Shown piece after piece: positions 8,801 to 47,084 of a stretch of DNA of 64,000 nt. How positions within the stretch are numbered: position 1 is the stretch's first letter; every line of letters begins with the position of its first letter. This DNA is from Macrostomum lignano (lineage: Eukaryota): assembly GCA_002269645.1 (NCBI GenBank), contig NIVC01000957.1, forward strand, positions 1 to 64,000. The letters run 5' to 3'. The position numbers and the translations under genes are program-made. The notes beneath the pieces were generated by a model that saw only the letters and a list, made by a program, of their open reading frames with translations, did not search any database and was not told where the DNA came from.

Positions 8801-11800
8801 GCAGGTAAAGGTTGACTGCATCACTAGCTAGCTCAGGACACTCACTGATTGCCCCCAGCCGCAGGTAAAGGTTTATGCCTTCCACCGACACCCAGACGGC
8901 AGGCTGCGGTTCGTAGCCACCGCCAGTCGCCTCCGCCGCATCCGCCGCCACCGCCGCCGGCTGACCAGTGGCGACGGCATCAAAGCGAAGCGGCTTCAAT
9001 TTCTGTTCCCTCCGCAGTCGGCCGTCACTGTTGTTACTGCTGCTGCCAGCTGCTGCTGCAAGGAAAGACGGGTGTCGCTTATCTTACTGCTTTCAGTAGG
9101 AAATTCTGTATGTCATTCTTAGACTCGCATTAGATAGTAACTTTTATACTTTTTTCAATATAGAAACACGATTTCTTCCATGTTGATATAACAATGATAA
9201 TTAATTACACCTGCCCTACTGGCCAGATGTGCAACCGACAGCTCAGCCGCAGCTATTGCGCGGCGCATCTGAAGGCTGCGTACGGCTGTTCAGTTCAAGG
9301 ACTGGGGGGTGGGGGGGGGTCGCCACACACACCCTCAATTACCCCAGCTAATGCTGGTGCCCATTTTACAGATGGGTGAACTGAAGCAATGCAGAGTTAA
9401 GCGTCTTGCTCAAGGACACAAATTGTTCCGAGTGGGGTCGAGAATCGAACCTCCGACCTTTCAGTCATTAGTCCGACGCTCTGACCACTAGGCTACAACC
9501 CCCTATATTGCTGTATATCCATATTGAATGCATATCAAATACTCTTTTTGTTATAAACATGGCAGTTTCACTGCTCGACCGATTTCATTTCAAAAAAGAT
9601 TTTGCACCGATTGTCTGAATCCTAACAATTCAGAATGGCACAGTTTAAATTTTGTTGAATTTACAAACTTTTAGAGCTGTGCGCACCCTGCTGAGACCTG
9701 CAGTGGTGGTTGCCCTGCCGAGGCCCCAGGGCTGCCAGGGGCATAGCCTCCTCCCCGTCTGGCACGGGCAGATGCGCCGTCAGCGCCACGCGAGCCTCCG
9801 CGTCTCCCTCTTCACTGCTACCGCTGCTGCCGCTGCAACCGTCGGCCTTCTGGAGCGTCGCGTCGGTGTTCAACGCGCGGCGCGGCTCCTTGAACCGGTA
9901 GATCACCAGGCTGATGAAGGCCAAGAAGACCAAGCCGGCGAAATGCATGTACAGGTAGAAAATCTGTGGGGTGCAATGGGGGCGCAACTGGGATATTTGT
10001 GCTCGGTTCACAGGTGCCAAGGGCTGTGGCTTTCGCTCCTGTCTCTTGGTGGGCGCCCCTGTCTCTTGGTGGGCGCCCCTGTCTCTTGGCGGGCGTCCCT
10101 GTCTCTGGTTGGGCACCTCTGTCTCTTGGTGGGCACCTCTGTCTCTTGGTGGGCACCTCTGTCTCTTGGTGGATACCCCTGTCTCTTGGTGGTCGCCCCT
10201 GTCTCTGCGTTGGCGCCCTTGTCTCTTGGTGGGCGCCCTTGTCTCTTGGTGGATACCCCTGTCTCTTGGTGGGCACCCCTGTCTCTTGGTGGATACCCCT
10301 GTCTCTTGGTGGGCACCTCTGTCTCTTGGTGGGCGCCCCTGTCTCTTGATGGGCGCCCCTGTCTCTTGGTGGGCGCCCCTGTCTCTTGGTGGGCACCTCT
10401 GTCTCTTGGTGGGCGCCCCTGTCTCTTGATGGGCGCCCCTGTCTCTTGGTGGGCGCCCCTGTCTCTTGATCGGCACCCCTGTCTCTGGGTGGCACCTCTG
10501 TCTCTTGGTGGGCACCTCTGTCTCTTGGTGGGCACCTCTGTCTCTTGGTGGGCACCTCTGTCTCTTGGTGGGCACCTCTGTCTCTTGGTGGGCACCTCTG
10601 TCTCTTGGTGGGCGCCCCTGTCTCGTGGTGAGCGACGAGGACGCGAGTAGACCCACCGTCTCCGTGCCTTCGGGTTCAAGCTTAAAGAACTGAAATCCGC
10701 TATTTTAATGATTTGCCTACTAATAGTAGTTGTGAGATCCTGCGCACGTGACTAAAAATAAGATTCGAACTAATCGCGATGCCGAATTCTTCTCCGTCAG
10801 CTGGTCTAACAACCCCCGAGGCAGCAGCCCCAAAAATCAATTTTTAAGTCGCTACTATTTAGCAGCAGTGAGGCAGTCAAGCTACTAATAGTAGGTCAAT
10901 TTTTGCAGATTTTCAGTTCTCAATCAAAACAAACCCCATCCTTCGCCAAGTAACGAAATGTCAATTGTCAAAGTGAAACCGGTTTTTGCTGCGGGAAGCC
11001 AGTGAGTGCACTGTGTGCGACTGAATCCGATTTCCGCTTTACTTTGTAATTGTAGCAGAAGCAGGAAAAATTTCCGGATTATCAAAAATGTTGAAGAGAA
11101 GAAAGTTTGACTAACTAGACTAACCAGGTGGGAACAACCGTCTCAGAGATGCTCTGATAATCCATAAAAGTCCGCGATATGAGCAAATAAAACCCGAGGC
11201 TAATCCAGAGAGCTGCTCTGCTGTTCCCTGCCCGACTCAGGTCTCCAGCCCTCCCGGCGCTGTCCCATCTCACAACGACGCTAATAAGTACACACTCGAT
11301 GCCCCTCGAGCCCAGAGAGATTCGCTCACCTTCCCACTTGGGTGTCATTACCTCCGCTCGAGTCCTATCTTACATCTCCCATCTTAGAGGAATCTGCCCC
11401 GATGTTTCCCTGGCCTGGCCACTCATCAAGTTCTCATCCTGCTCCCGCTGCAACTCAGACTTCGAGCTCCGGTCTTGCGCTGCCTCGAATTCGGAGACTG
11501 TTTTTGCACTGTTGTGAGCAACTGTTGCGGAACCGCAGTTGAGTATCTGTGAGATGGAGGATGAAGAGAGTTCCAGTTCGGAAGTGGGGGATGCAGAGAG
11601 TTCCAATTCGGAAGTGGGGGATGAAGAGAGTTCCAGTTCGGAATTGGGGGATGAAGAGAGTTCCAGTTCGGAAGTGGGGGATGAAGAGAGTTCCAGTTTG
11701 GAAGTGGATGATGAAGAGAGTTCCAGTTCGGAAGTGGGGGATGCAGAGAGTTCCAATTCAGAAGTGGATGATGAAGAGAGTTCCAGTTCGGAATTGGGGG

Positions 11801-14800
11801 ATGAAGAGAGTTCCAGTTCGGAAGTGGGGGATGAAGAGAGTTCCAGTTTGGAAGTGGATGATGAAGAGAGTTCCAGTTCGGAAGTGGGGGATGAAGAGAG
11901 TTCCAGTTTGGAAGTGGAGGATTCGGCAACACATTCAGGAAACGTTCGGGAAACATAGGATGAGGAGAGTTCCGATTGGGAAGTTGGAAAGAAAAGAGAG
12001 TTCCAGATGGGAAGTGAAGTCAAATTATAATTGCAAGGAAATCCACCCAAAATCATGAAAAAATTGAAGTCTAATATGTATATACATACATACTAGTACA
12101 TAGAAAATTTGAGATTTATTTATATAGATTTCTAATCAATTTTCGACAATAATGTTTGGGCAAAAAAGTTCTGAGGAAGAGAGGATTGAGTAGAGGAGAG
12201 AGGCGAACGCGCGAGTGAGTGATCTGGAAGCGCATCGTTACGAAAAATATCAGCAATAGAAAAACGAAAAAAAGAGCACATCGAGCACAGAAACTGCTCT
12301 GTCCTGTGAAAGACATCTGAGCAGCTTCAGATTTACTACAGTATTCAGCTTCTGCTCTGAAACTGGAATGCCAGGGACACCTAGAGAGACAGAATCTGGA
12401 ATGGAATGCCAGGGACTCCTAAACAGGCAGAGAATCTGGAATAGAGTGCCATGGACTCCTAGAGAGACAGAGAATCTGGAACAGAATACCAGGGACTCCT
12501 AGAGAGACAGAGCATCTGGAACAGAATACCAGGGACTCCTAGAGAGACAGAGCATCTGGAACAGAATACCAGAAACTCCTAGAGAGACAGAGAATCTGGA
12601 ACAGAATACCAGGGACTCCTACAGAGACAGAGAATCTGGAACGGAATACCAGGGACTCCTAGAGAGACAGAGAATCGGAAACAGAATACCAGGGACTCCT
12701 AGAGAGACAATCTAGAACAGAATACCAGGGACTCCTATAGATACAAAGCATCTGGAATGGAATTAAAGGGCTAATTAGATAAGAATACTGTTATTTCCAG
12801 GAGTTGGAAAAGCAGAAAAGCTTGAAATCAGCAGGAGAAAAAAGAGCACATCGAGCACAGAAATTGCTCTCTCCTGGGAGAAACATTTGAGCAGCTGCAG
12901 ATTCGCTATATGATTATTCGAGTTGCCGGGAGTAAAATCCCCCGTTCTGCTTCTGTCCCAGCCAGGGCAAGGGGCATATCGATCCTTTTCAGAACCAGAA
13001 AAAGTCTGGGCCTGGTCGATTAAGAGGCCTCAGGTCTTCCCTGCCGCTGTGAGCTCCTGCCGGACCCAATTCTCGTCTCGGTAATGTTGGCCATCCTTTT
13101 CCCTGCAATATTAGTACTTGTGCAGTAGTAGCGCGGGGTCCTAAGGCAGGACTGAGTTCCATTAAATTCCGAGCTGAGTAATTAAAAGGATTAATTACTA
13201 CTTGAGCAGATCTTTGTAGATCAGGGAGGCAGTAGTAGCATCAGGGAGGGAGTAGTGGCATCAGGGAGGGAGTAGTAGCATCAGGGAGGGAGTAGTGGCA
13301 TCAGGGAGGGAGTAGTAGCATCAGGGAGGGAGTAGTGGCATCAGGGAGGGAGTAGTGGCATCAGGGAGGGAGTAGTGGCATCAGGGAGGGAGTAGTAGCA
13401 TCAGGGAGGGAGTAGTGGCATCAGGGAGGGAGTAGTAGCATCAGGGAGGGAGTAGTGGCATCAGGGAGGCAGTAGTAGCATCAGGGAGGGAGTAGTGGCA
13501 TCAGGGAGGGAGTAGTAGCATCAGGGAGGCAGTAGTAGCATCAGGGAGGGAGTAGTGGCATCAGGGAGGGAGTAGTGGCATCAGGGAGGGAGTAGTAGCA
13601 TCAGGGAGGCAGTAGTAGCATCAGGGAGGGAGTAGTAGCATCAGGGAGGGAGTAGTGGCATCAGGGAGGCAGTAGTAGCATCAGGGAGGCAGTAGTAGCA
13701 TCAGGGAAGGAGTAGTAGCATCAGGGAGGGAGTAGTGGCATCAGGGAGGGAGTAGTAGCATCAGGGAGGGAGTAGTGGCATCAGGGAGGGAGTAGTGGCA
13801 TCAGGGAGGGAGTAGTGGCATCAGGGAGGGAGTGGTAGCATAAGGGAGGGAGTAGTAGCATCAGGGAGGGAGTAGTGGCATCAGGGAGGGAGTGGTGGCA
13901 TCAGGGAGGGAGTAGTGGCATCAGGGAGGGAGTAGTGGCATCAGGGAGGGAGTAGTGGCATCAGGGAGGGAGTGGTGGCATCAGGGAGGGAGTAGTAGCA
14001 TCAGGGAGGGAGTAGTGGCATCAGGGAGGGAGTAGTGGCATCAGGGAGGAGTAGTGGCATCAGGGAGGGAGTAGTGGCATCAGGGAGGGAGTAGTAGCAT
14101 CAGGGAGGGAGTAGTGGCATCAGGGAGGGAGTAGTGGCATCAGGGAGGGAGTAGTGGCATCAGGGAGGGAGTAGTGGCATCAGGGAGGGAGTAGTGGCAT
14201 CAGGGAGGGAGTAGTGGCATCAGGGAGGGAGTGGTGGCATCAGGGAGGGAGTGGTGGCATCAGGCAGGGAGTAGTGGCATCAGGGAGGGAGTGGTGGCAT
14301 CAGGGAGGGAGTAGTGGAATCAGGGAGTAGTGGCATCAGGGAGGGGGAGCTCTAGTCCATCTACAGGACACAATCCGTGAAAGAGATTCGCTTCGATTTC
14401 AGCTCGATGTCATTTGCAATTAGTTCACCAGCCCAGTTGTCAGCCCCCATTGCTCTCCTACGAGTAATCGGATTCGAGAGTCAGCCCAGCAGAGCAGACA
14501 CTGGATAAGAGCGAGTCAACGTCAACGATCACAGTCAACTTAAATTAACTCAATCAACTCCAGCTGTTTAGGAAAACAGCTTTGAGTCCAGCTGATTCGG
14601 TTAAAAACTTGATAAATCCAATGAATAATCCTAGGGTTAGATTGCGAGTACACGTGCAAAAGTACACGTACACCTCAGGGGAAAGCCAGTACAGGGACTG
14701 CTAGAGAAACAGGGAATCGGGATGCCAAGGACTCCTAGACAAACAAAGAATCTGGAACGGGATGACAAGGACTCATAGAGAGACAGAGACTCTGGAACAG

Positions 14801-17800
14801 AATACCAGGGACTCCTAGAGAGACAGAGAATCTGGAACAGAATACCAGGGACTCCTAGAGAGACAGAGCATCTCGAACAGAATACCAGGGACTCCTAGAG
14901 AGACAGAGCATCTGGAACAGAATACCAGGGACTCCTAGAGAGACAGAACATCTGGAACAGAATACCAGGGACTCCTAGAGAGACAGAGCATCTGGAAAAG
15001 AATACCAGGGACTCCTAGAGAGACAGAGCATCTGGAACAGAATACCAGGGACTCCTAGAGAGACAGAGCATCTGTAACAGAATACCAGGGACTCCTAGAG
15101 AGACAGAGAATCTGGAACAGAATACCAGGGACTCCTAGAGAGACACAGCATCTGGAACGGAATACCAGGGACTCCTAGAGAGACAGAGCATCTGGAACAG
15201 AATGCCAGGGACTCCTAGAGAGACAGAGCATCTGGAACAGAATACCAGGGACTCCTAGAGAGACAGAGCATCTGGAACGGAATACCAGGGACTCCTAGAG
15301 AGACAGAGCATCTGGAACAGAATACCAGGGACTCCTAGAGAGACAGAGCATCTGGAACGGAATACCAGGGACTCCTAGAGAGACAGAGCATCTGGAACAG
15401 AATGCCAGGGACTCCTAGAGAGACAGAGCATCTGGAACAGAATGCCAGGGACTCCTAGAGAGACAGAGCCTCTGGAACGGATCCTAGGAACAGATCAGAA
15501 TATTGCTATTTCTAGAAGTTGGAAATTCAGGAAAGCTCGCTGCTGTTTCCAATCCAGAATCCTAGGTTTAGGCGTCCTAGTCTTAGTTGCTCTGCTAGAC
15601 TCAGGGTTACCTCCTAACCGGGCATCCGGGAAGCTCACAAATATATTTTCGCATTAAAATCCCACAGTTGAGCTGCCTCGCCAGCTTTTCTACAAGAGGA
15701 GAACAGCACAGCGCCCTGATTTATGCCGCCTGCCGCAACCGGAAGCGGAACCGGAAGCAGGCGATCGAATCGGACGACTCACCTGGTCGTAAGTCTGATG
15801 CCGGAGGGTGCCGCTGGCCAGCCCGTCGCTGACGGGGATCACCACACCCAGCATGGTGAGGCTGATGCTGTACAGAATGATGAGGGAGCTCAGCACATGA
15901 CGCCGTGGGCTGCCCGCACCTCCGTCCTCGGCGTCCTCACCGACACCGTCGGCAGCTGGCCCGAGCGGCTTCTCAATCAAGCAGTCGGAGCCGGGCCGGG
16001 CGCTGAGGTGTGGGGGGGGGGGTTTAATAGGCCTGAAAAATGTACTACTCTGTAAACTGAATATCCTGCACATGACACACGTCAGTTGTTTAATAGCTTT
16101 GCAAATATTTATATTATTCAATTCGTTAAACTTCCCATTCCTTCAACACCCATTCCTTAGATATCCCATGCCTTAAGCATCCCATTCCGTAAACATCCCA
16201 AAAAGGCATTGATAAGAGTCAGTTGCATATCAAGTATTGATATCAAGTCTCCGTGCTGATAGCCTAATTAACATCTCATTAAGGTATTTACAGCTACCAA
16301 GCAAGCTCAGGGGCTCGGCCTACTCGTATAAACAGTTTCAGAAACACCTGTCAGACAAATGGAATTGAGGATGAGGAAGCGAATCCCCAGGCAGACTGTG
16401 CCCCCCCCCCAGCTAATCAATGCAGCCTGGCAGAGCGCGCTTTCCATTTGGCTCTCCGTCATTGAATTTTGGTGCGGCCCAGCCAAGCGTATGAAGAGGA
16501 AGAGGCTGGGCCAGCGCCAGGTTCCCACGGTGCAGCCTCTTGAATGTTTCATGACTGCCCGCCCCCTTCACCGATCGGGCCGGGGCAGCTGCTGCTGTCC
16601 TTAAAAAAATTTGGGCGCCAAGCGGCGGATGCGGGGCGTCCAGCCAGCCTCTGAGCTGCATCGCGAGAGAGAGAGAGAGAGAGAGAGAGAAGCGCAGTCC
16701 GACAGCCAAGGTCTTTTGTCTCCGGTGTGAATGCCCCATGCATCCCATTGTGCTGGCCTGAGAGTTTCATGTTTCTCCACCTCTCCGCCTGTTTCCGTGG
16801 GCGCACACACACGACAGTCACAGAAGGTGCACACTGCGGAGTCTGAGCAGTGTGCTCAGGGCGCATGGCTGCTGGCCTTCTGGCTGGCTGCGGGCTGACT
16901 TTTGCGTGTGATCTATGCGCAGTCCGAAGTTCTGCGGGGTCAAAGTGCACCCAAGGACTTCTAGACTAGCTAGTCTAGAAGTCCTTGAGTGCACCCCCTC
17001 CAGTCTGAGCTAACTCGAACGAGCAAGTCCTGGGGTGCAGTCTGTGTGCTTCCCACTCGCATTCCGGGTGGCACGAGAGCAAATCTAATTGAGATGCTTC
17101 GAATCTTGCGGCCCCAACAGTTTGTTTTATCTTTGCCGTTGCGAGAGTTGCAGATCTCTCTGGCGCACAAGCTCACTTGGCTCGGAGTAGACAGGCTCAG
17201 ATGAAGGATCGATGGAGGCTGGCATTCAGCTTTAGCATTCAGCCAGCACTGCCGATTCTCCCAGCCATTCCCCAGATTGACTGCCTGTGTGCTCGGCACT
17301 TCAAGGACTTGGGGCAGGCCGCGCGGATTAAAGTAGGGATTTCAGTTCCGCAGCCTGGGATTTTATGACGCTGAGGAAATCGGGAACAGAAGCGGTTTCG
17401 AAGGAGGGTTTGGAGCAGAGTGGCGCCGAAACCGTTCTCTTATGACATATGGTTACCGGGCTCGAATCCCGATGCGGCGAAATTTCAATTTAGGTTAGAT
17501 AAAAAACCATGGCGTGTCAAGGATTGCCAGTTTAGGAGTGAGGGTTGCCACTCTGAGAGTGAGGGTTGCCACTTTAACAACCAGGAGCCCCTTAAAAGAG
17601 CTAATCATCAGCCATCGGAGTTCGGTTTGAATCAGTTTAGCTCCACATCAATCTGTAGGCATCAAAGCCAGCAAGTTGGCTTTGTCGGCTTGCTTTTTGA
17701 CCGGCAGCGACTGATCGATCAGCCACCTGAAAGCCAATCAAGCAACTGCCTGCTTTAATCAGCCTGTCGTCAGGCAGTGCACACAGGAAACTGTTGAATT

Positions 17801-20860: not shown

Positions 20861-20893
20861 ACACAGGATACACGTACGCAGCCAGCTAAGGCA

Positions 20894-23221
20894 CAAGGAC
20901 TTCTCAAGTAGAAGGACGTTACACTCAAGTTATCGTGTAAATTTTTTTGGCGGCCGATTGTTTTGAAGTGCTGTAACTTTTTAAGTATTGCATGTAGAAG
21001 GCTAATTCTTTCGCTGATTTGTTCAGAATTTATTCCTCTTTAAAATAATGCTACATTTACGGCTGTATCTGCACGAGGGCGGAAGCAAAGTACAGTAAAG
21101 TACATGTACCTCATTATTTCTAAAAGCAAAATTTATAATTTAAGCACGCTATCTGATTTTTAGTTACTAGGAGCGTATAAAAATGTAGCTATATAGCTAC
21201 ATCCAAGGCATAAAGTGATTAAAGAACAATTGAACAAAGATACACGCATCCTAGGGCCACTGCATGGCTTGACACGGGAGGCTCTAGCGAAGACTGACGA
21301 TTGATATTGATTGACATTATAAAAAGGGAAAATTCTTGATGCTGCTGCAGCTATATTTCAAAACCCTGAAGCAAAAAAACAAAATAAAAGATTTAGAGCG
21401 TAGACGGACAATAGACACAACACATAGTGTCGACTTTGAACGCTTGAAAGAAACGCTTGTCGAGGATTGTTGACTGGATCACAAGCAGCCTGCAAAGTTT
21501 CTATAAGTGCTTGTCTAATTCAACAGACTGCACGACTTGTGCATGCTTCACCCTGTTCAACACAGCTTCCAACTGGCTGAACCGCTTAAGTCGGTTTTGA
21601 AAACCCAGCAGATCCGTGATGTGCACTGATGTATTGCATCGGTGAGCGACTGCTGTTAAGTTGCTTCTTATGGAAACATAGGCATCCACAGTTCGATCAG
21701 TAACTTTCAGTAGGTTCACATGGTCCGACTCCTGCTGCACCAGCCATCCATCAGTAGAGATGCAGTTCATTTTACTAACATGCTCAGTGAACATCTGCCA
21801 CGAACTAATGCGGTCATGTGCATTAAACTCTTCTAGTTCATCTGGGATTGCAGCTCGCTCATTCAAAAGCACGCGACGTCGGGACACATCCCTTGATTTC
21901 CCTGAGAGGTTCAATGATATCAAAATATGACTTTGGCAATGCAAAATCTCCAGCGAGTTGTCTAATGCCAAAGGACGCCAGAAATCTCACTTGGTACAGT
22001 CTGACGCAATGTGCTGGATGCAACAGATGGGAATATACTTGGTGGATCAGCAGGCCATAGAAAGCGCTTCACCTTCATCATCCTTGCATTTTCAGGCCAA
22101 TGCTTGACACAAATCCTTGTCAAGTTTGTTATTCTCTGTGGAAAATAAGTATAATATTGACATTATAATGTAGAGAACAAGCATGGAAAGGTTTTAATGC
22201 ACACAAAATATCTACCTTAACTGTGGTAGGCAAGGCTTTTTTCCATGCTTCATAGTCAGCTGTAGACTTTGGGAAACTATAAACAGTAACTTTAGGCCCA
22301 GTAAGGTAGTTTCCTTTGCAGCCAGGAATGCAGCACTTCAATGGCATGAAGACTAGCTAGAATTAGGTTTAAGATAAATGTAAAAAATTGTTTCTTTTAA
22401 TATATAACAGTTTTAAGGCAATAATCTAAGTAATAATAGAACATAATATAATACTATATAAAATAATAATAAATTATACACTAATACACTCATAGAATGT
22501 TGGTAAATAAACTTGATAAATTTGTACCAGTTGGTATTAGTCATATTGAAGAAATAGGTTGTGTCATATTGTAGAAATATATGTGTAGGCTATAGTCTTT
22601 AATTGTCTTTAAATATTACTATAGTATATAGTGTGAAAGTTTTGAATACCATTAGTTTATACATTTGACGTTGTAGCTTTTTCTAATTTAAAATGACTAA
22701 CCAGATGGCTCAGTTTTTGTAGTATTTGTAGCTAGTAAGTTATATACTTACCTACCTAGTCAATATAGTCATATGCATATTCCTAGCCAAGATAAGACCA
22801 ATACTTCTAAAAACTAATATGAGCAATAAGAGTAAAAACAAATATTATGCCTCTGCCTCTTTGTATTCATTTTAAGTATATTAGTGAAATAAAAAACTAT
22901 TTTGGTGGTTCCCTTCTCTTTGTCTAATATTACAAAAAGAGTAAACTGTTTTCATTAATTTTTACTAAAGAAAAAGTCACAAAAATAGCATAAATACAAA
23001 TGGCATGGACCCAGTCAAATTAAAAAGTAATACAATATGATATTTGTGTTTACAAATTGATGGGATGTTTTAAAGCAAGGCCGCAATCAAGCACAGCACT
23101 TAATTTAGATGAAAAACGTGAAAATTTCCTATCTCGCAAATGCATTTTACGGTGAAAATCGGCCGTCTAAAAAATTTCCACGAAAGCTGAGTGTAACGTC
23201 CTTCTACTTAAGATGTTCTTG
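20894..23221 (-). mobile_element. P-superfamily (THAP) DNA transposon, internally deleted and non-autonomous
   Basis: Imperfect ~65-bp TIRs (caaggacttctcaagtagaaggacgttacactca... versus the reverse complement of the right end caagaacatcttaagtagaaggacgttacactca...); exact 8-bp TSD ctaaggca at 20886-20893 and 23222-23229; THAP gene inside. Confidence 0.9.
21501..22347 (-). CDS. THAP zinc-finger protein (transposase N-terminus), 3 exons 22347-22216, 22135-21991, 21901-21501
   Basis: Splicing restores the C2CH THAP: MPLKCCIPGCKG...SFPK...W...|RITNLTRICVKHWPE...PPSIFP. GT-AG introns of phase 0 and 1. No catalytic DDE core recognisable before the left TIR. Confidence 0.8.
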
Positions 23222-23519
23222 CTAAGGCATCTGAGAATGTCGTGCACTTTTACGAGACAGCCAGTCAGACGAAGATGCCTACCTTCTAAACACTGGTCAC
23301 GGCAGCATTAGCTGGTGCGGAAAAATCAATTACCGCAACTCCTCCATCTAGGCTGCGCTGCCCCGCAATTTCAAGCAGCGAAGCCACCTGCCTCAACTGC
23401 CTCTGGGCAAGGAGAGCTCAAGTTGAGCTTTCGGCACATTGAAAAGCAAATGTACCGATGCTTGAGTTGAAAAACTTTCAATTTTGAGAGTTCTGCGATC
23501 ACAGTGAAAATTTAAAACA

Positions 23520-26174: not shown

Positions 26175-33296
<7,122 letters not shown>

Positions 33297-34060: not shown

Positions 34061-36072
34061 GACTGAGCCAATGTAAAATGAATTGCTATCAATGCAGAAA
34101 TTAGCAAAAGAGCTTACTGGATTTTTAACAAAGCCTTCATGCACAGTGCCCAGCATCTTAGTGCCAGATGACATTCAAATAGAATGTGGCGGAATTCAAT
34201 TAGCCTCCTAAGCTATTGAAATCAAAGCAAGGTTTGAATTATTGCTACTTTGTTCCAACAATGCTTGCACTTGCAGCTCACTTTAATAGCTTCATTTAAT
34301 CATCAATAGCTTCATCGCAAAGACTGAAAAATGTTGAGGCATTTTGAAAATAATCAGATTTTCATAAATACTATTGTTTTCATAAATATTATAAATAAAT
34401 TAATAGATATAGATATTTACCCTGCAATTTTGACAACTGTGTGTATACAATGATACAATAAGATAGCTATTATTAGCATTAGAATTATATCTAGTGATAT
34501 GTTTAATTTTCTATTATTACTAGATCCTGATTAAGAACTTCATCAGATAAAATACAAAGTTGGTACTTATCAAAGAAAAATTCATCTACTATTCATATTT
34601 TTCAAATTAAGAAATTTTTATCTATATCTATACCATGGTGTCTAATTTAGTTTGTATAGAACCATAAATCTTGGCAAGAGGCACAGATAGAAACTAAATA
34701 TACAAAAAATTAGCAATTCAGATATACTAAATAAAATGGTTTACTAAAACTAAAAAATACCAAGCAGGTGCCAATATGGTTGCCAAATCATATTGCTATA
34801 ACAGATAATGTGGCACTGCTTGGTAGTGCTCATTAACTATTTGACTTGCATTGCATATTTAGACACTTAACATCTATTGTACTCATTGCCAATGTACTTA
34901 GTGAGGAGTCCATTGTGATCAAAATTGTACATAGACAGACAAACAGTTTTGATTTTTATAGGTATAGAATATCCCAATAAAATGGCCAAAAAGTGCAACA
35001 ACTTAGCAATCTAAAAACAATATAAAAGTTCAATTCAAAGCCTTAATGTATAATATATCTATTATAACATGAAATCATTAGATACTTCTAGTTATTTTAT
35101 CATTTTCCTCTGTATTTATATTATTTGTTGCATTGTATCAACTCTTTTCTGTTTAAGAGAGCTCTTTTTAATTGTATTATTTTTAAGTTCTTTTATTTTA
35201 AGAGAATATAAGACTTCAACTGATAGCCAAACCAGCCTTTATATTATCTTGAAAATGACCAATGGCAACATGTTGCCTACAATACTAGTATTAGTACAGT
35301 GCGATCAAACCATTCCAAGCTTTAGCATATAGATAGATAGAAAGATACAACATGCCATGCGTGCAACACTTCACTTTTACTAATCCTTGTTACATTTGAC
35401 ACAGACAATCTTCAACTATTTTGACACAATCATGTACAATTTTGAGTCTCAAAGTTACGCTTGAATAGTGCTATGTGCTTTTAAATTTAGGCTGCTTTTG
35501 TTAGCAAGGCAGCCACCCTAACCTCTACTTGTCTCTCTTTCCTAATCTAGGCCCAATGTGTAAAGGGGCTTTTAAAATTGACTAACTTTTGGCTGCCATT
35601 AGTTTGCTCCACATAAAGTGATTGACTTCAAACTTGACAAAATATTTCACTGACTCATTTATTGTCTAAATAGTCTCAACTTTGTAACTCAATCAAAACA
35701 GAAACTGCAAGTGTGTGAAGTTTGTCTGCTTTTTATGTTGTTTGTGCCACTCATTCACTCATTCCCACAAAGCCAGACCAAGGGTTGGGTGATAGGGCTA
35801 AATGTACATAGCAATGAATAGTGTTTTGGAATAACTTTTTATCACCTCTATACCCCTATGGCGAGGCTAATGTTTAACGTCTATACTCCCAGTACCAGAA
35901 CCAGTACCAAAAAAGAAAATACAAAATACCAGTAAAAAACGAAAAAATAATCAAGAAAAACGTCTAAAATGGTAAAAATCAACTCCAGCAATTATTATAA
36001 GCGTTACCACAGCGTTCAACATATTTCGTTTCAGCGAATTACATTACAGCATAACTTAATGCCTATTAAAAT

Positions 36073-36539: not shown

Positions 36540-39500
36540 GTGAGCCAGAATCCGAACGGGAGGCGAACTGGCGGCGCTATCAAGAGGCAAGAGCTTCGTG
36601 ACCTGGATCCTGTGCAAATCTCTGTCGATGAAGCACGCTGCTGTCAGTCTCAAGTGCCAGTGCCCCCCGGGCTTGGCCAACCGTCAACGAACTACATGGA
36701 GACGGGAGACTCATTCCTGCTGGACACCAGGCCTTCCGCGGCAGCTGCGGCAGCTGCAGTGACACATCCACCAAGACCCTCTGTGCACCGTATGGCCGAA
36801 CCATGGGCTCCGTTGCTCCAAAGCGGATCTCACCCTGGCGCTGGCGCCCGCAACCTGTGCGCACCGGTATATCAACAAGCAATCCAGCTTCCGTCGGTGC
36901 CGAAGCCGGCGCCCTTCAACGGATCCGAACCGTTCGATGACTTTCTGGGTCGAGTGTCTTCATATTTAAGCCGGCACCAAGGACTGAGTGACTACAGCAA
37001 GATCAACACGCTCAGCAGTTACCTGGGACCAGCATTCGCTACCTACGAGGTCTGGCTCTACCAACTGTGCGCGCAGCATGGACAGCCCGTTGGGACTTCA
37101 CTGCAGTTCCTGCCAGGTGCCCGCTATGAAGATCTCCTGCAGCACCTTCGCGCTCGTCATGGCGGTGCCACCAGCACTGCGCTACTTCGGCGCGAGCTTC
37201 ACAGCCGGTGCCGGGGCAGGGACGAGAGGTTCGAGGATTTTCTGACTGCCCTCCAGCGACTCGCGTTCAAGGCCTACCCAGAGCTCGGTGCTCAAGACTG
37301 TCGCCAGCAGACTGTGCTTGAGCGGTTCATTCAAGGGCTGAACGACAACTACGTGACGGAGCGGCTGCTTAATATGCAGCTGCCTCTTACTACACCGGAT
37401 CAGGCCCTGCACTATGCCCAGCAAGTGCGCGAGACCCGGCAGATAATGAATTCCCAGTCGCAGCACCACAGCGCCGAGGCGTCAGCTCCAGCGGCACCAG
37501 CTCAGTCAACACCGACAGGAACCCGACCGCAGCATGGGCCATGGCCCATGCAGAAGCCATGCCACAGACGACACAACATCACCAGCCAGCGGCTCATCGA
37601 GCGCAGACAGCCCCAGCGCCACCATGGAGATCAGCTGACGCCGCTGCACATCAACAGCAGCAGCCTAGGGCGGTGCCCATCTGCTACGGCTGCCATCAGC
37701 CTGGCCACATCCGCCGGAGGTGCCCAAACGCTGGGGGGGGGGGGCTGGTCCAATGGGCCAGCACCGGCCCTCTCAGCACTAAGCAGTTCGGCCCAGCCCC
37801 CACGCCCCAGCTGCCAGCCCGACCAAGTGCGCTTCATCACCTCGCGCATGCTCAGAAAACGCCGGCCGTGCATGATCGACACCGGTGCCGAGATCTCCTG
37901 CATCAACGGCGACATCGTGCACTCGGCCAGGCTCAGGCGGCAGCTGAGACCCAGCTCAACAACCATCTATGGCGTGGGCGGCAATCAAGCAACAGTGCTG
38001 GGCGAAATTGAGATAAGTTTTTTTCTTGGTCCGCTTCATTTTCGACACAGATTCCTGGCGGTGACCTGCCTCAGCGCACCGGTAATTCTGGGCTGCGACT
38101 TCCTAAACAAATTTGACATTTCGATTCACCTGAGATCAGGCATTCTCGAGTTTAACGGCCTCGGCGTCACCTTGCCAATGCGGACATCCAGGCAAGCGGC
38201 CCAGACTTGCAAGCTGGCAGCGGCGGCCACGGTTCGACTGCAGCCAGGCGATGGCTGGATCATTCCGGTGCGGCCAGCGAGCGCGGCAGCGTGGACGAAC
38301 TCGGAGGCACCAGGCGTTGTCTGCGGTAGCAAGGCGGCCAAAGTGATGATCGGCCGCAGCGTGTCCAAGCTAGTTGACCACGGAATGGGGGTTGCTGTAA
38401 TCAACACCAGAGATGAGACAGTCGAGATCAAGGAGGGCGACATCGTCGGCAACTTTAACCCGCTGTCTGGCCAAGCCCTGGCGCATCTACAAGCCGGAGG
38501 ATCTGGTGATGGCAGCGAGGCAGATCCGACTACTGCAACGACCTGGCAGGACGAGGTGCAAATCGCCGATGACATCCCAACCGAGGAGCGGCAGCAAGTC
38601 GAACGCCTTCTGCTAGAGTTCAGTGACGTATTCACGAGCCCCAGCAACCCAGGCCGCACCCAATTGTTAAAGCACGAGATCGACACAGGCAACGCCAGGC
38701 CAATTCGCCAAGGACTGCGGCGCCTGGCTCCCACAGCGATCGCACAGCAGAAGGAGCTGGTTAACGAGATGCTGGAAAAGGGAGTCGTCCGACCATCGTC
38801 ATCACCTTGGGCATCTCCGATAGTTCTGGTTCGCAAGAAGGATGGGTCGGCCAGATTTTGCTTAGACTACCGCCTGCTGAACGCGGTGACCAAGCCCGAT
38901 GCATTCCCGATGCCCCGCATCGATGACACTCTGGATGCCCTCGAAGGAAACAGCTACTTCTCAGCGCTGGATCTCGAAAGTGGCTACTGGCAAGTCGAGA
39001 TGAATGACCGGGACAAGGAGAAGACGGCATTTGTGTGCCATGAAGGCCTGTTTGAATTCAACGTGATGCCGTTCGGACTACGGAATGCACCAGCCACCTT
39101 TCAGCGGCTCATGCAGCTGGTGCTCCGGGGACTGACGTGGCAGGCCTGTCTGGTGTTCATTGACGACGTCATCGTGATGGGCCAGACCATCGGCCAGCAC
39201 AACGATCGGCTGCGTTCAGTTCTGGAGCGACTGCGCGAGTTCAACCTGCGCCTCAAGCCGTCAAAGTGCCGATTTGCAAATACCAGCATGTTAGTCCTGG
39301 GCCACCGCGTCAGCAAGACCGGCATCACCGTCGATGAGGGCAAAACCGCGGCTGTGCGGGACTGGCCGGTGCCCCGGAGCTCGAAGGACGTCAAGAGCTT
39401 CCTCGGCATGACCTCCTACTACCGAAGATTTGTGCGCGAATACGCCAAGATCGCCGAGCCTCTGCGCCGCCTTACACTGCCGACGCCCTTCGAGTGGACG

Positions 39501-41663
39501 CCAGAAGCCGAGGCGGCCTTCAACCAGCTGAAGCAAGCGTTGCTGTCAGCTCCGATCCTGGCGTTCCCGGACATGAGCGAGTCGGGCTCCGAATTCATCC
39601 TCGTCACCGACGCAAGTGACTGCGCAATCGGCGCGGTGCTGTCGCAAGTGCAGGCGAGCGAAGAGCGGGTTATCACCTACGCCAGCCGCGCCCTGTCAAG
39701 AGCTGAGCGCAACTACTGCGTGACGCGGCGCGAGCTCCTGGCTGTTGTCGAGTTTGTTAAGAAGTTCCGGAGCTACCTGCTGCCGCGCGCCTTCACCGTT
39801 CGAGTGGATCACCAGGCGCTCACCTATCTGCTGGCATTCAAAGAGCCCGAAGGCCAGCTGGCCAGATGGCTGCAGCTGCTCGATGAGTTCAACTTCAAGG
39901 TCGTCTTTCGCCGAGGCCGCCAACACGGCAACGCAGACGCCCTCTCTCGACGAGAGCAAAAGTGCACCAGCCAGTGTCGAGTCTGTCGGCCAGGGACGAC
40001 AGCGGTGGCGCCAGCCGAGACTTCAACAGCCGCCTGCCAGACGGAGCCGACGGTCGAGGCGCCAGTGCCAATCGCGGAGCCTGCTGGCCGGGTCGACACA
40101 GTCAGAGTCAACTCCGTGCAAACCAACGCAGCGACATCAGCGCCGGCTACCTCTGCGGCTGCCCAGACCAACGCCGAGCCGGAACGTCAGGGCACTTCAA
40201 GGCGGAAGCAGCAGCTTCAACCGCGGCCAAGCGAGAGCGAGGACTCCTGCGAAGACGAAATCAGCGACGAGGCCATTCAGGAAGGCGAGGCGCTGTCAGA
40301 TGCGTCTCAGTCACTGCGTGAACTGCAGCTCCGTGATCCAGACATCGGCCCGGTGTTTCGCCTGCTGTCCAACGGCAAGACAAGGTTCAGCGCCAGCAGA
40401 CGTGACCGACTGTCGCCTGAGAGCCTAATTCTGGCACAGAAGATCGGCGAACTGTGTTTCGTCGACGGCGCCCTGAACAAGCTGGTGAAGTCCAAGCCGG
40501 TGCCTGTGATTCCGCGCTGCAGACAGGAGGAGTTCATCGAGGAGGTCCATGAGCTTGGGCATCTGGGCGAGGACAAGACCTTGGCAGCCCTCAAGCAGCG
40601 TTGCTACTGGCCGAAAATGGCGGAGAGCGTTCGCCTAGCGGTCAGGTCCTGCCAAGTGTGCCAGCGCGCTAAGACACCGAGTCAGCGCCGAGCTCCACTG
40701 CAGACTATGGCCAGTGGATTTCCTATGCAACGCGTGGGCACTGACGTGGTCAAAGTTGGACTGTCACGGCGGGGCAACGATCGGTTGCTCACCATTGTCG
40801 ACTACTTCACCAAGTGGGTCGAGCTGGTGCCACTCCCCGACGAGAAAGCGGCCACCATCGCCAAAGCACTGTTCGACAACTGGGTGACGCGTTTCGGAGC
40901 CCCGCACATTCTGCACTCCGACCGTGGCAAGGCCGTGGACGGCAAGGTCATCAGGAGCCTGTGCCGGCTGCTGGAGATTCAGAAGACGCGGACATCCGGC
41001 TACCATCCGCAGTGCGACGGCCTAGTAGAAAGGTTCCACCGCACTCTGCACCAGATGCTCCGCTGCCACCTGCAGTCAGTCCAGCCGGAGGACTGGGAAG
41101 AAGTGCTGCCGCATTGTCTCCTGGCCTACCGCAGCAGCGTCAATGCTACAACTGGGTTTACTCCTCACTGCCTGCTGACTGGCCGGGAAATGACGCTTCC
41201 AGTTGACGTCGTCTACCGGCCACCGGAGCCGCCAATGACAGTCGGTCAGTTCGCCGCCAACAACCGCGACCAGCTGCTTCGCGCCTACGACTCCGTGCGG
41301 CGATCGATGGCGACGGCACAACGGCGCCAGTGGCGGTACTACGACCAGAAGGCCAAGCGATGCAGATTCCGGGTCGGCGACCTCGTATGGGTTTTTATTC
41401 CGCCGTCGGCGCTTTCAAGGACGACTGGACTGGCTCCGAAACACCAGGCGCCCTGGACCGGCCCGTTCCGGGTGCTGCAGCGAACGTCGCCGGTGAACTA
41501 CCTGGTTCGTCCTATCGATTACAAGGACGGCGACACCGGTCGGGTGGTCCACGCAAACAAGCTGAAACGTGCGCACCAACCCCGCGCTCCCGACCCGGCG
41601 CGGAGTGAGGCGACCAGCGACTGCAGCAGCGAAGTTCTTGACGATGGCTGGGTCCTAGTGTGA
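36540..41663 (+). CDS. gag-pol: Gypsy Gag-Pol polyprotein (Gag, PR, RT, RNase H, IN)
   Basis: 1707-aa ORF: protease IDTGAEIS; RT PWASPIVLV, FCLDYRLLN, FIDD; RNase H VTDASD, NYCVTRRELLAV; integrase H-x3-H..C-x2-C, LHSDRG, GLVERFHRT, GPF motif. Order is PR-RT-RH-IN. Confidence 0.96.
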   Translation: MSQNPNGRRTGGAIKRQELRDLDPVQISVDEARCCQSQVPVPPGLGQPSTNYMETGDSFLLDTRPSAAAAAAAVTHPPRPSVHRMAEPWAPLLQSGSHPGAGARNLCAPVYQQAIQLPSVPKPAPFNGSEPFDDFLGRVSSYLSRHQGLSDYSKINTLSSYLGPAFATYEVWLYQLCAQHGQPVGTSLQFLPGARYEDLLQHLRARHGGATSTALLRRELHSRCRGRDERFEDFLTALQRLAFKAYPELGAQDCRQQTVLERFIQGLNDNYVTERLLNMQLPLTTPDQALHYAQQVRETRQIMNSQSQHHSAEASAPAAPAQSTPTGTRPQHGPWPMQKPCHRRHNITSQRLIERRQPQRHHGDQLTPLHINSSSLGRCPSATAAISLATSAGGAQTLGGGGWSNGPAPALSALSSSAQPPRPSCQPDQVRFITSRMLRKRRPCMIDTGAEISCINGDIVHSARLRRQLRPSSTTIYGVGGNQATVLGEIEISFFLGPLHFRHRFLAVTCLSAPVILGCDFLNKFDISIHLRSGILEFNGLGVTLPMRTSRQAAQTCKLAAAATVRLQPGDGWIIPVRPASAAAWTNSEAPGVVCGSKAAKVMIGRSVSKLVDHGMGVAVINTRDETVEIKEGDIVGNFNPLSGQALAHLQAGGSGDGSEADPTTATTWQDEVQIADDIPTEERQQVERLLLEFSDVFTSPSNPGRTQLLKHEIDTGNARPIRQGLRRLAPTAIAQQKELVNEMLEKGVVRPSSSPWASPIVLVRKKDGSARFCLDYRLLNAVTKPDAFPMPRIDDTLDALEGNSYFSALDLESGYWQVEMNDRDKEKTAFVCHEGLFEFNVMPFGLRNAPATFQRLMQLVLRGLTWQACLVFIDDVIVMGQTIGQHNDRLRSVLERLREFNLRLKPSKCRFANTSMLVLGHRVSKTGITVDEGKTAAVRDWPVPRSSKDVKSFLGMTSYYRRFVREYAKIAEPLRRLTLPTPFEWTPEAEAAFNQLKQALLSAPILAFPDMSESGSEFILVTDASDCAIGAVLSQVQASEERVITYASRALSRAERNYCVTRRELLAVVEFVKKFRSYLLPRAFTVRVDHQALTYLLAFKEPEGQLARWLQLLDEFNFKVVFRRGRQHGNADALSRREQKCTSQCRVCRPGTTAVAPAETSTAACQTEPTVEAPVPIAEPAGRVDTVRVNSVQTNAATSAPATSAAAQTNAEPERQGTSRRKQQLQPRPSESEDSCEDEISDEAIQEGEALSDASQSLRELQLRDPDIGPVFRLLSNGKTRFSASRRDRLSPESLILAQKIGELCFVDGALNKLVKSKPVPVIPRCRQEEFIEEVHELGHLGEDKTLAALKQRCYWPKMAESVRLAVRSCQVCQRAKTPSQRRAPLQTMASGFPMQRVGTDVVKVGLSRRGNDRLLTIVDYFTKWVELVPLPDEKAATIAKALFDNWVTRFGAPHILHSDRGKAVDGKVIRSLCRLLEIQKTRTSGYHPQCDGLVERFHRTLHQMLRCHLQSVQPEDWEEVLPHCLLAYRSSVNATTGFTPHCLLTGREMTLPVDVVYRPPEPPMTVGQFAANNRDQLLRAYDSVRRSMATAQRRQWRYYDQKAKRCRFRVGDLVWVFIPPSALSRTTGLAPKHQAPWTGPFRVLQRTSPVNYLVRPIDYKDGDTGRVVHANKLKRAHQPRAPDPARSEATSDCSSEVLDDGWVLV

Positions 41664-43004: not shown

Positions 43005-45180
43005 TCGCGTCTGTTGTGGCTCAAGGCAGCTCATAAGCTGACCTGCGATGGATAATCAATCCTCGCTTCTGTTGTGGCTCAAGGCAGCTCATAAGCTGAC
43101 CTGCGATGGATAATCAATCCTCGCTTCTGTTGGGACTCAAGGCAGCTAATAGCTGACCTGCGATGGATAATCAATCCTCGCTTCTGTTGTGGCTCAAGGC
43201 AGCTCATAAGCTGACCTGCGATGGATAATCAATCCTCGCTTCTGTTGGGACTCAAGGCAGCTAATAGCTGACCTGCGATGGATAATCAATCCTCGCTTCT
43301 GTTGGGACTCAAGGCAGCTCATAAGCTGACCTGCGATGGATAATCAATCCTCGCTTCTGTTGGGACTCAAGGCAGCTAATAGCTGACCTGCGATGGATAA
43401 TCAATCCTCGCTTCTGTTGTGGCTCAAGGCAGCTCATAAGCTGACCTGCGATGGATAATCAATCCTCGCTTCTGTTGGGACTCAAGGCAGCTAATAGCTG
43501 ACCTGCGATGGATAATCAATCCTCGCTTCTGTTGGGACTCAAGGCAGCTCATAAGCTGACCTGCGATGGATAATCAATCCTCGCGTCTGTTGTGTCTCAA
43601 GGCAGCTCATAAGCTGACCTGCGATGGATAATCAATCCTCGCTTCTGTTGGGACTCAAGGCAGCTCATAAGCTGACCTGCGATGGATAATCAATCCTCGC
43701 TTCTGTTGTGGCTCAAGGCAGCTCATAAGCTGACCTGCGATGGATAATCAATCCTCGCTTCTGTTGGGACTCAAGGCAGCTAATAGCTGACCTGCGATGG
43801 ATAATCAATCCTCGCTTCTGTTGGGACTCAAGGCAGCTCATAAGCTGACCTGCGATGGATAATCAATCCTCGCGTCTGTTGTGTCTCAAGGCAGCTCATA
43901 AGCTGACCTGCGATGGATAATCAATCCTCGCTTCTGTTGGGACTCAAGGCAGCTAATAGCTGACCTGCGATGGATAATCAATCCTCGCTTCTGTTGGGAC
44001 TCAAGGCAGCTCATAAGCTGACCTGCGATGGATAATCAATCCTCGCTTCTGTTGTGGCTCAAGGCAGCTAATAGCTGACCTGCGATGGATAATCAATCCT
44101 CGCTTCTGTTGGGACTCAAGGCAGCTCATAAGCTGACCTGCGATGGATAATCAATCCTCGCTTCTGTTGTGGCTCAAGGCAGCTCATAAGCTGACCTGCG
44201 ATGGATAATCAATCCTCGCTTCTGTTGGGACTCAAGGCAGCTAATAGCTGACCTGCGATGGATAATCAATCCTCGCTTCTGTTGGGACTCAAGGCAGCTC
44301 ATAAGCTGACCTGCGATGGATAATCAATCCTCGCTTCTGTTGTGGCTCAAGGCAGCTAATAGCTGACCTGCGATGGATAATCAATCCTCGCTTCTGTTGT
44401 GGCTCAAGGCAGCTAATAGCTGACCTGCGATGGATAATCAATCCTCGCTTCTGTTGGGACTCAAGGCAGCTCATAAGCTGACCTGCGATGGATAATCAAT
44501 CCTCGCTTCTGTTGTGGCTCAAGGCAGCTAATAAGCTGACCTGCGATGGATAATCAATCCTCGCGTCTGTTGTGTCTCAAGGCAGCTCATAAGCTGACCT
44601 GCGATGGATAATCAATCCTCGCTTCTGTTGGGACTCAAGGCAGCTCATAAGCTGACCTGCGATGGATAATCAATCCTCGCTTCTGTTGTGGCTCAAGGCA
44701 GCTCATAAGCTGACCTGCGATGGATAATCAATCCTCGCTTCTGTTGGGACTCAAGGCAGCTAATAGCTGACCTGCGATGGATAATCAATCCTCGCTTCTG
44801 TTGGGACTCAAGGCAGCTCATAAGCTGACCTGCGATGGATAATCAATCCTCGCTTCTGTTGTGGCTCAAGGCAGCTAATAGCTGACCTGCGATGGATAAT
44901 CAATCCTCGCTTCTGTTGTGGCTCAAAGCAGCTAATAGCTGACCTGCGATGGATAATCAATCCTCGCTTCTGTTGGGACTCAAGGCAGCTCATAAGCTGA
45001 CCTGCGATGGATAATCAATCCTCGCTTCTGTTGTGGCTCAAGGCAGCTAATAAGCTGACCTGCGATGGATAATCAATCCTCGCGTCTGTTGTGTCTCAAG
45101 GCAGCTCATAAGCTGACCTGCGATGGATAATCAATCCTCGCTTCTGTTGGGACTCAAGGCAGCTGCTAAGCTGACCTGCG
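43005..45180. repeat. 52/53-bp minisatellite, about 41 copies
   Basis: Unit tcaaggcagct(cata/aat)agctgacctgcgatggataatcaatcctcgcttctgttg(tgg/gga)c. Confidence 0.97.
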
Positions 45181-47084
45181 AGGGGTAAAGTGCCATATAT
45201 CAGCAAACGCTAGCGCTCGTAATGTGAGGCCGTGCCCACCCTCCCTGCAGGTGATAGCTTTGTTGGCTCTCCGACAAACTATTGCATTCTTATTGTGCTG
45301 GAGAGGTTTGACTCCCAATGGCATGTAGTCTGTCGCGGTTACTTAGTGTATCAGATTACCCTATTATCTGGTGCAGCTGGGTGTCTAGATGGAGCTGTGG
45401 CATGGTTCCAAAAGCTCCTACTGGCCCAGTTCTAAGGTAGCCTTTTTTTAAGACAGACGTTATTCTAGCTCTTGCTAGAGCATGCTCCATTGGGTTTTTT
45501 TAAAGCGTCTGCAGTGTTGGTGTATGGCCACCAGTGAGGGATAATTGAACCCCGCTTCAACCGATGAATCAAAGTTGAGCAGTTGACTGAAAATGCTGAC
45601 CTACGAGGGGTAATCAAACCTCGCGTCTGTTGTGGCTCAAGGCAGCTGCTAAGAGTAGTCACTTTTATTTGACTACGCGGGTCAATCTTTAATCCGAGGG
45701 GTAATAAAGCCTCGAAATTGCAAGGTGAATTGATCTGCTTTTCGGAGGCACTGTAGCGTCCGTAATGTGAGGCTGTGCCCATCCTCCGTACAGGTGACAA
45801 TTGAAAAATTGTTGCGCCCTGTTTGTGTGCGAGAGGTTTGACTACCACTGGCATGCAGTCTGTCACAGCTGCTTAGTGTGTCAACGGGCTGAATGATTCT
45901 ATCGTCTTATTTGACGCTTAGAAGCATGAGTCAGCCAACCATATTGTTTGGCACAGCTGGGTGTCTAGACGGAGACTGTGGCATGGTTCCAAATAGCTCT
46001 AACTGGCCCAGTATGCAAAGCAGCTTTCCTATTAAGATAGACGCTAATCCGATTTTTTTCGGTGCATGCTCCATTGGTTTGTCTAAGGCGTTTGCAGTTG
46101 CACCAGCCGTGAGCAGAACAAGTCAAGAGAGTAGTCGTTACAGACTACGAGTGTCGGTAATCTTGTCGAGATTTAATAAATCCTCGAACAAGTCAAGAGA
46201 GTAGTCGTTACAGACCATGAGTGTCGGCAATCTTGTCAGCCACTTTTTCCGGAGGGTGTCACTGCTTCGAACGACGCAGTTGATGACGCCGTTGGACGAT
46301 CGTCCATCGCACTAGCGACATCTGCAACGCCAAGTCGGTTGGATATTACCGTTGGCACACGGGATTGCGAAAACAATCAGGTAAGAGTTTCCAGCGTAGT
46401 CGGCATTTCGTGGACGCAACGAAGCCAGCGCCGCGCGAGCCGGCGCATCAGATGATACACCATTCACTTTGTCTCCGGTCTACGAGCAGCCGATCAACGA
46501 AAGCCAGTTGATTCCGGACGACGACTATGCTACGAATGACAATTCTATCGACGTATGTTCTATCACCTGTATGTACATTACTGTTTCTTTATAACTGTGT
46601 ATATTTTGGAGAAACTGCCTTCCATCGCCATTTAATTTAACTTTAATATTGCAGAGTCGTTCCATTGCGCCGGCATATAATGCAAGCCCCCGTCAGTGGT
46701 CTCATTAATCGCCTTCCACGCGCGCAACCCGATCTTTCAAACGTCTGGCTCACGCATCGACTGCCATCAGAGTCGCGTCCGAGTACAGCAGGTCCGACCT
46801 GCGACTCAGCACCAGCTCGCAGCAGATCACCAATTCAGTAGTATCAATTAGTATCCACAGTATAAGTAGGTCTACTTATAACTGGACTGTCGAAACTCAT
46901 ACGTATGCCACGCTGTTCTCCAGAAGTTTTCGTTCCTGTTGAGCTTGTTCCTGTTCCTTGTTTAGTTTGTATAAGGCGCTCACAAAGTACAACCCGCTGT
47001 TAAATATAGAGAGGCTACTCATAAAATCTTGAATCACCAACTTCTTATACGCATCTTTACTGCGAAATTTGATGTCAATGCCTT

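Follow-up and report, generated by a model that had tools for sequence, protein, structure and literature searches.

How a perfect 36-bp palindrome came to lie between two copies of the same 8-bp sequence is the question raised by a 64,000-nt stretch of the Macrostomum lignano genome (contig NIVC01000957.1, positions 1–64,000; hereafter, the window). The structure occupies 52 bases (16944–16995) and consists of AGTGCACC, the palindrome, and AGTGCACC again; the palindrome itself (16952–16987) is CAAGGACTTCTAGACTAG joined to CTAGTCTAGAAGTCCTTG, two 18-nt arms that are perfectly complementary with zero spacer between them. The first-pass annotation, whose description of the palindrome and its flanking repeat was confirmed, took this structure to be the scar of an excised transposable element of the P superfamily. 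We consider this explanation probable: the site would be the donor-site footprint of a staggered P-type excision followed by end joining, with a source element from the P/THAP9 superfamily.

The palindrome and its matching transposon terminus

The structure stands out from its sequence background. It contains the only perfect palindrome with arms of at least 12 nt in the window (n = 1), and among all short near-palindromes listed from 171 kb of M. lignano DNA (the 64-kb window plus 107 kb of other loci; hereafter, the DNA examined) it alone is flanked by a direct repeat longer than 3 bp. In the DNA examined, 8-bp direct repeats that enclose a CA...TG palindrome occur at two sites, compared to none in 10 and 20 block shuffles, and the probability that chance alone produces a palindrome of 36 bp flanked by an 8-bp repeat is roughly estimated at ~1e-11 per window. 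Palindromy ends beyond the flanking direct repeats. Because the core of the 8-mer (GTGCAC) is self-complementary, repeat finders stretch the palindrome to 25+25 at 96%; the flanks nonetheless agree at 8/8 positions as a direct repeat vs. 6/8 as an inverted one, and since the outer two bases agree only in the direct orientation, a target-site duplication (TSD) fits them better. Both TSD copies are kept around the palindrome, as is expected of a P-type excision footprint.

The arms match the end of a transposon from the same species. In the public M. lignano assembly, a P-type element at a second locus (L008) has a 5′ terminus, CAAGGACTTCTAGACTAA, that begins at 8893, and its first 18 nt (8893–8910) are identical to each arm at 17/18 positions (chance expectation ~3e-4 in the DNA searched). 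A longer element beginning with this 18-mer was the main check proposed in the first-pass annotation, and L008 provides it, given that the terminus is located ~1.1 kb upstream of an 833-aa transposase gene of THAP9/P type (P0187). When five P-like termini were aligned, similarity started exactly at CAAGG in all of them and the flanks were unrelated. L008 also shares a 5′-specific subterminal block with related copies, and ~100 bp of subterminal sequence is conserved among the M. lignano copies. The common start, the unrelated flanks, and the shared block identify L008 8893 as a true element end.

Weaker similarity connects the arms to other termini. Two other M. lignano P-type copies agree with them at 15/18 and 14/18 positions. 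Within the window, the 18-mer occurs four times with up to three mismatches (0.09 expected), i.e., as the two arms, at the terminus of a neighbouring element (20894), and in the first unit of a satellite (14726). The terminus at 20894 shares its first 11 nt with the arm and 15/18 positions overall, the former as the first-pass annotation had stated. The satellite unit, which agrees with the transposon terminus at 15/18 positions, has no terminal inverted repeat (TIR) or TSD structure and probably matches by chance. An 11-nt match between the palindrome centre and the sequence upstream of the THAP start codon (ATG) was likewise within chance expectation.

These results leave little room for a chance palindrome, an assembly artefact, or a structured RNA gene, each of which we find barely credible. 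Long-read assemblies can hold palindromic artefacts, and the palindromic core of the TSD could favour a chance origin; however, the flanks are direct rather than inverted repeats, and shuffled sequences yield no comparable structure even before the 17/18 match to a transposon terminus is taken into account. An Rfam search of the structure gave no match. Exact matches to the 18-mer numbered one in bacterial/archaeal genomes and two in Joint Genome Institute (JGI) metagenomes, none of them with a palindrome or TSD, and these counts are at or below chance.

P/THAP9-type elements in M. lignano

The protein encoded at L008 places the matching terminus in the P/THAP9 superfamily. P0187 carries a THAP domain, a TNP-like RNaseH_N domain, and a GTP-binding insertion domain (PF05485, PF21787, PF21788), and its residues 226–671 align to the Drosophila P transposase (6P5A chain A; E 6.7e-8). 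This domain set and homology to Drosophila P are joined by TIRs and an 8-bp TSD, the latter two being taken from the window copy (20894–23221) and the copy at a further locus (L007), given that the L008 copy is seen by its 5′ terminus only. GTP-dependent cleavage with a 17-nt stagger would be expected of a member of this superfamily; what P0187 shows of it is the GTP-binding insertion domain. Two frame changes at T-runs are needed to read the C-terminal ~90 codons of P0187 (L008 12780–13070), and the tail of the annotated 833-aa model is out of frame; these frame changes may represent early decay or homopolymer errors of the long-read assembly.

The neighbouring element of the window belongs to the same superfamily (Table 1). 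It has TIRs of ~53 nt and is bounded by an exact 8-bp TSD, CTAAGGCA (20886–20893 and 23222–23229), in agreement with the first-pass annotation. A full HMMER search of 1.8 billion representatives recovered 607 relatives of its protein, the long members of which carry THAP, P-transposase helix-turn-helix (HTH), TNP-like RNase H, and GTP-binding insertion domains (PF12017 among them). The open reading frame (ORF) in the window aligns to the first 250 residues of these long relatives. The domains of the relatives and this N-terminal alignment identify the neighbouring element as an internally deleted member of the P/THAP9 superfamily, bearing out its earlier description as P/THAP-like. Its assignment to hAT, which the 8-bp TSD and a CAAGG end fitting YARNG would allow, was ruled out by the transposase domains and the 6P5A match.

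Table 1 Coordinates in the window of the palindromic structure, labelled according to the excision reading, and of the neighbouring P/THAP9-type element
Feature	Position	Strand	Basis
Left 8-bp TSD copy, AGTGCACC	16944–16951		Exact direct repeat of 16988–16995
17 nt of one transposon terminus, CAAGGACTTCTAGACTA	16952–16968	+	Same as the first 17 nt of the P-type element whose 5′ end is L008 8893; first 11 nt identical to the terminus at window 20894
Central GC	16969–16970		nt 18 of each terminus, or a 2-nt insertion/microhomology from end joining
17 nt of the other terminus, inverted, TAGTCTAGAAGTCCTTG	16971–16987	-	Perfect reverse complement of 16952–16968
Right 8-bp TSD copy, AGTGCACC	16988–16995		Exact repeat of 16944–16951
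Internally deleted P/THAP9-type element (2,328 bp) with TSDs	20886–23229 (element 20894–23221)	-	TIRs, TSD, and coding remnant
N-terminal region ORF of the neighbouring element	21501–21971	-	Aligns with full-length P-type transposases
Second THAP exon of the neighbouring element	~21962–22123	-	Two-exon THAP domain
THAP exon of the neighbouring element	22129–22347	-	Two-exon THAP domain

Cluster look-ups led to three M. lignano relatives with genomic DNA, and one of these loci provides evidence of mobility. The L007 copy, of the same group as the neighbouring element, is 3,483 bp long (L007 8935–12417) with the TIR CAAGGACTACTTAAGTAGAAGGACG and an exact 8-bp TSD, AGCAAATG. It is inserted in a dispersed repeat (L007 8474–8931 and 12418 onward), an uninterrupted paralogue of which is located in the window (35369–35814; ~81% identity) and carries the L007 target once. 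This paralogous empty site with a single target shows that the P-type family moved and duplicated 8 bp; 8-bp TSDs in the family, proposed in the first-pass annotation, are therefore found in the window copy, in the L007 copy, and in its empty site. Two M. lignano THAP genes at other loci (P0006 and P0155, in L006 and L009) have no recognisable P-type termini and no 18-mer match, and a further alignment-based homology search returned no additional M. lignano proteins. A final cluster look-up likewise yielded none with genomic DNA.

The 5′ TIR of the L007 copy (L007 8935–8968) has a 9-nt insertion after nt 15–17, CAAGGACTACTTAAGTA-TCGTTTATA-GAAGGACG, and the 3′ TIR is without it. A P-type transposase would be expected to make its 5′ cut at this point, so the insertion might be a repaired one-ended cleavage, though it is a single case.

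Other superfamilies that make 8-bp TSDs were also considered. The hAT elements do so, the CAAGG end fits their terminal consensus (YARNG), and some THAP domains are fused to hAT-type proteins; 8-bp TSDs and YARNG-type termini are thus common to the family described here and to Ac/Ds, hobo, and Hermes. Excision of these hAT elements, however, proceeds via flank hairpins and leaves altered TSD junctions, with a few changed or palindromic bases between the TSDs and no TIR ends, rather than ~17 nt of each TIR. Transib and MULE (Mutator-like) elements form flank hairpins as well, Tc1/mariner excision leaves 2–3 nt, and piggyBac excision is precise. To our knowledge, no other superfamily leaves scars with ~17 nt of each TIR. 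The site retains TIR ends, and the element with the matching terminus encodes a transposase that carries RNaseH_N and GTP-binding insertion domains and aligns to Drosophila P; a scar or remnant of hAT or another superfamily with 8-bp TSDs is therefore extremely unlikely.

Proposed excision geometry and repair

The dimensions of the site match those of Drosophila P footprints. In their accounts of cleavage, PMC7776569, PMC10983969, and PMC2895639 place the 3′-strand cut of the Drosophila P transposase at the end of the element and its 5′-strand cut 17 nt further in, a geometry that produces 17-nt non-complementary 3′ tails on the donor. Junctions recovered after excision of P{wa} are always located between both 8-bp TSD copies, the commonest being 14+(AT)+14 and 15+(TA)+15, with 17+17 blunt, 17+AC+16, and 17+TA+17 also present (PMC2895639); the last of these has exactly the 52-bp layout of the M. 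lignano site. Drosophila footprints and the M. lignano structure share both TSDs and inverted TIR ends, which in Drosophila comprise up to 17 nt of the 31-bp TIR and are joined directly, via a 2-nt self-complementary microhomology, or with a few inserted nucleotides. These dimensions support the P-type excision proposed in the first-pass annotation, and the tests that were run refuted nothing in it. The differences are that the present site belongs to the phylum Platyhelminthes, that its terminal sequence is unrelated to that of the Drosophila element (CAAGGACTT... vs. CATGATGAA...), and that it records a natural, undated event, whereas the P{wa} events were induced.

Based on the 17/18 match to L008, the structure reads as 8-bp TSD, 17 nt, GC, 17 nt, and 8-bp TSD. 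Position 18 is A in the L008 terminus and G in the termini of the related subfamily (window 20894, window 23221, and L007), which makes 18+18 nt a possible alternative reading of the scar. The earlier claim that 18 nt of each end were retained therefore holds to the extent that both arms are perfect over 18 nt, but the reading of 17 nt plus GC against L008 is also possible.

In the excision scenario, a source element of the subfamily with the 5′ terminus CAAGGACTTCTAGACTA would have inserted at AGTGCACC and duplicated these 8 bp. By analogy with Drosophila, its transposase would later have made a staggered cut at each end, severing the 3′ strand where transposon and flank meet and the 5′ strand ~17 nt further into the transposon; each flank would thereby keep a ~17-nt 3′ single-stranded tail of TIR sequence. 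Host end joining would then have linked the two tails, which are identical but not complementary to each other, with their ends almost abutting, through a 2-nt GC insertion or microhomology, or as a blunt 18+18 junction with 1 nt added per side, yielding a TSD, 17–18 nt, the same 17–18 nt inverted, and the second TSD. The two arms are perfect, equal in length, and both stop at or beside nt 17; such symmetry is what an enzyme-defined cut would produce, and deletions with random end points would lack it. Slippage between the self-complementary CTAG motifs (nt 15–18) was considered as a joining route and rejected, because it would yield 32 bp rather than the observed 36 bp.

The interior of the element could instead have been lost during abortive template-directed gap repair, i.e., synthesis-dependent strand annealing (SDSA) and end joining, or through another in-situ internal deletion, in which case the site would be an extreme internally deleted P copy that says little on stagger length. 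Most P{wa} repair products in Drosophila arose in this way, by incomplete synthesis from one or both ends and subsequent end joining (PMC2895639); 1 nt of synthesis per end could account for 18 retained nt in place of 17, and the neighbouring element at 20894–23221 is likewise internally deleted. Synthesis-dependent deletions, however, are normally asymmetric with end points deeper in the element, whereas both arms stop here at the same position, and the junction is without microhomology unless the parent element continued with C, CT, and so on. We regard gap repair as unlikely and, given that it starts with the same transposase cut, as a variant of the excision explanation.

A minimal mobile element is a different kind of alternative. 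With its perfect TIRs and perfect TSD, the structure formally qualifies as a TIR element, and the 36 bp could have been inserted as such, as a miniature inverted-repeat transposable element (MITE) composed of two terminal repeats. Neither the 36-mer nor the 52-mer has a second copy in the window or in the 107 kb of other M. lignano loci, a sample small enough that moderate copy numbers are possible. The sequence is far shorter than any described MITE and has no internal or subterminal sequence, whereas P elements of Drosophila depend on transposase-binding sites located internally, beyond the terminal 31 bp, and the M. lignano copies have conserved subterminal sequence in common. P-derived MITEs such as BuT5 of the Drosophila repleta group are likewise non-coding with P-type ends and TSDs, but they are ~1 kb long, multi-copy, and mobile (PMC3698922), unlike the 36-bp sequence, which lacks an interior and occurs once in the DNA examined. 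A MITE origin is accordingly very unlikely.

Several points weigh against P-type excision as the origin of the structure. BLAST, regular expressions, and local alignment did not locate the 3′ TIR of the L008 copy in the 10 kb examined, and no complete source copy of the L008 subfamily with both TIRs and a TSD was recovered in the DNA examined. The scar has G at position 18, where L008 has A. Should the central GC derive from the transposon, the site would retain 18 nt, one more than Drosophila footprints and than a 17-nt tail, which would imply a different stagger or a small amount of synthesis or insertion. The 17-nt stagger itself is carried over from Drosophila, and its presence in M. lignano would follow by analogy. 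The scar is known from one allele. In addition, the DNA examined is partly biased, the window was picked on account of this site, and 171 kb is tiny beside a genome of roughly 0.8 Gb.

A second candidate scar was found at L008 13912–13957, ~850 bp downstream of the stop codon of the P transposase gene. Here, the 8-bp direct repeat GTCTTCCA surrounds a 30-bp near-palindrome, CAGAAAATATCGAGC joined to GCTTGATATTGTCTG, in which 13/15 positions are complementary. Further footprints were anticipated in the first-pass annotation, and this is the one additional candidate (an 8-bp repeat around 15+15 nt); its terminus matches no element in the DNA examined.

Significance and genomic setting

The very long 17-nt stagger is a hallmark of the Drosophila P transposase, and the scar would provide natural genomic evidence for the same cutting geometry in a distant protostome lineage, the flatworms. 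It also implies a past P-type excision, hence activity, in M. lignano, a laboratory model for regeneration. In the literature library searched, no publication deals with P-type elements or their scars in Macrostomum. The first-pass annotation overstated the novelty of the site, which it inferred would extend the staggered-cut mechanism to a non-insect lineage, because vertebrate THAP9 proteins excise P-type elements in the cell assays presented in PMC10983969. Zebrafish Pdre2/zfTHAP9 and human THAP9 represent the P superfamily outside insects; the TIR elements that these transposases excise have 8-bp TSDs, and the assays gave imprecise donor repair and one-ended cleavage events (PMC10983969, PMC8230255). 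These were plasmid assays in cultured cells with larger flanking deletions, and the portions of PMC10983969 and PMC8230255 concerned with them neither describe a natural scar of ~17 nt per end nor map the 17-nt stagger for non-insect P relatives. The M. lignano scar is accordingly a clean new example of a known process and involves no new mechanism.

The genome-wide distribution of scar arm lengths could serve as a simple test of the stagger. Tentatively, and with more doubt than confidence, a ~17-nt stagger could be ancestral across the P/THAP9 superfamily, and M. lignano P elements could be recently or currently active, judging by the near-intact 833-aa gene at L008. Scars might then be common (two candidates per 171 kb), a census of arm lengths might read the stagger, and a native transgenesis vector might be possible.

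The site is located near an otopetrin gene, the exons of which are 100% identical in the window to the M. lignano UniRef entry A0A1I8HN11. The 5′-most block conserved with an otopetrin paralogue (15778–15896) falls ~1 kb short of it, and the 3′ end of a MARK-like kinase gene is 9 kb away; based on these positions, the earlier placement of the scar in intron 1 of otopetrin is not established. The flanks of the scar are single-copy in all M. lignano DNA compared. A paralogous otopetrin locus (L002) was considered as an empty-site comparator and rejected, because it is an old paralogue with exons ~80% identical and is unalignable around the scar. The 3′ exons of the MARK/Par-1-like kinase (26175–29286, minus strand) include a KA1 domain (26175–26642) and the end of the kinase domain (28774–29217), and are interspersed with 21-bp minisatellites.

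Other repeats and transposable elements were noted in the window. The 40-bp satellite, CCAGGGACTCCTAGAGAGACAGAGCATCTGGAACAGAATA, is present at 12366–12757 and 14725–15478. An uninterrupted 1,707-aa ORF at 36540–41663 (plus strand) encodes a putative gag-protease-reverse transcriptase-RNase H-integrase polyprotein (Ty3/gypsy type, judged by eye) and looks like a young copy of a long terminal repeat (LTR) retrotransposon. An exact look-up of one transposable-element ORF of the window gave no match. A repeat at 51168–51652, which includes the hairpin ATTATGCTGCACTCACGCGGAGTGCAGCATCAT, is 98.8% identical to L008 1–482 and is possibly a young unclassified transposon; the window copy is adjoined by a 248-aa ORF (51675–52421) with no Pfam match. 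A Helitron fragment is located at 62340–63838 (plus strand), with an ORF (63029–63838) that matches Helitron_like_N (E 1e-47), and is preceded by a 69-bp minisatellite (61167–61699). Minisatellite density in the window is very high overall, with 60 Tandem Repeats Finder rows at periods of 16–173 bp and arrays that reach 2.2 kb (e.g., 43005–45188).

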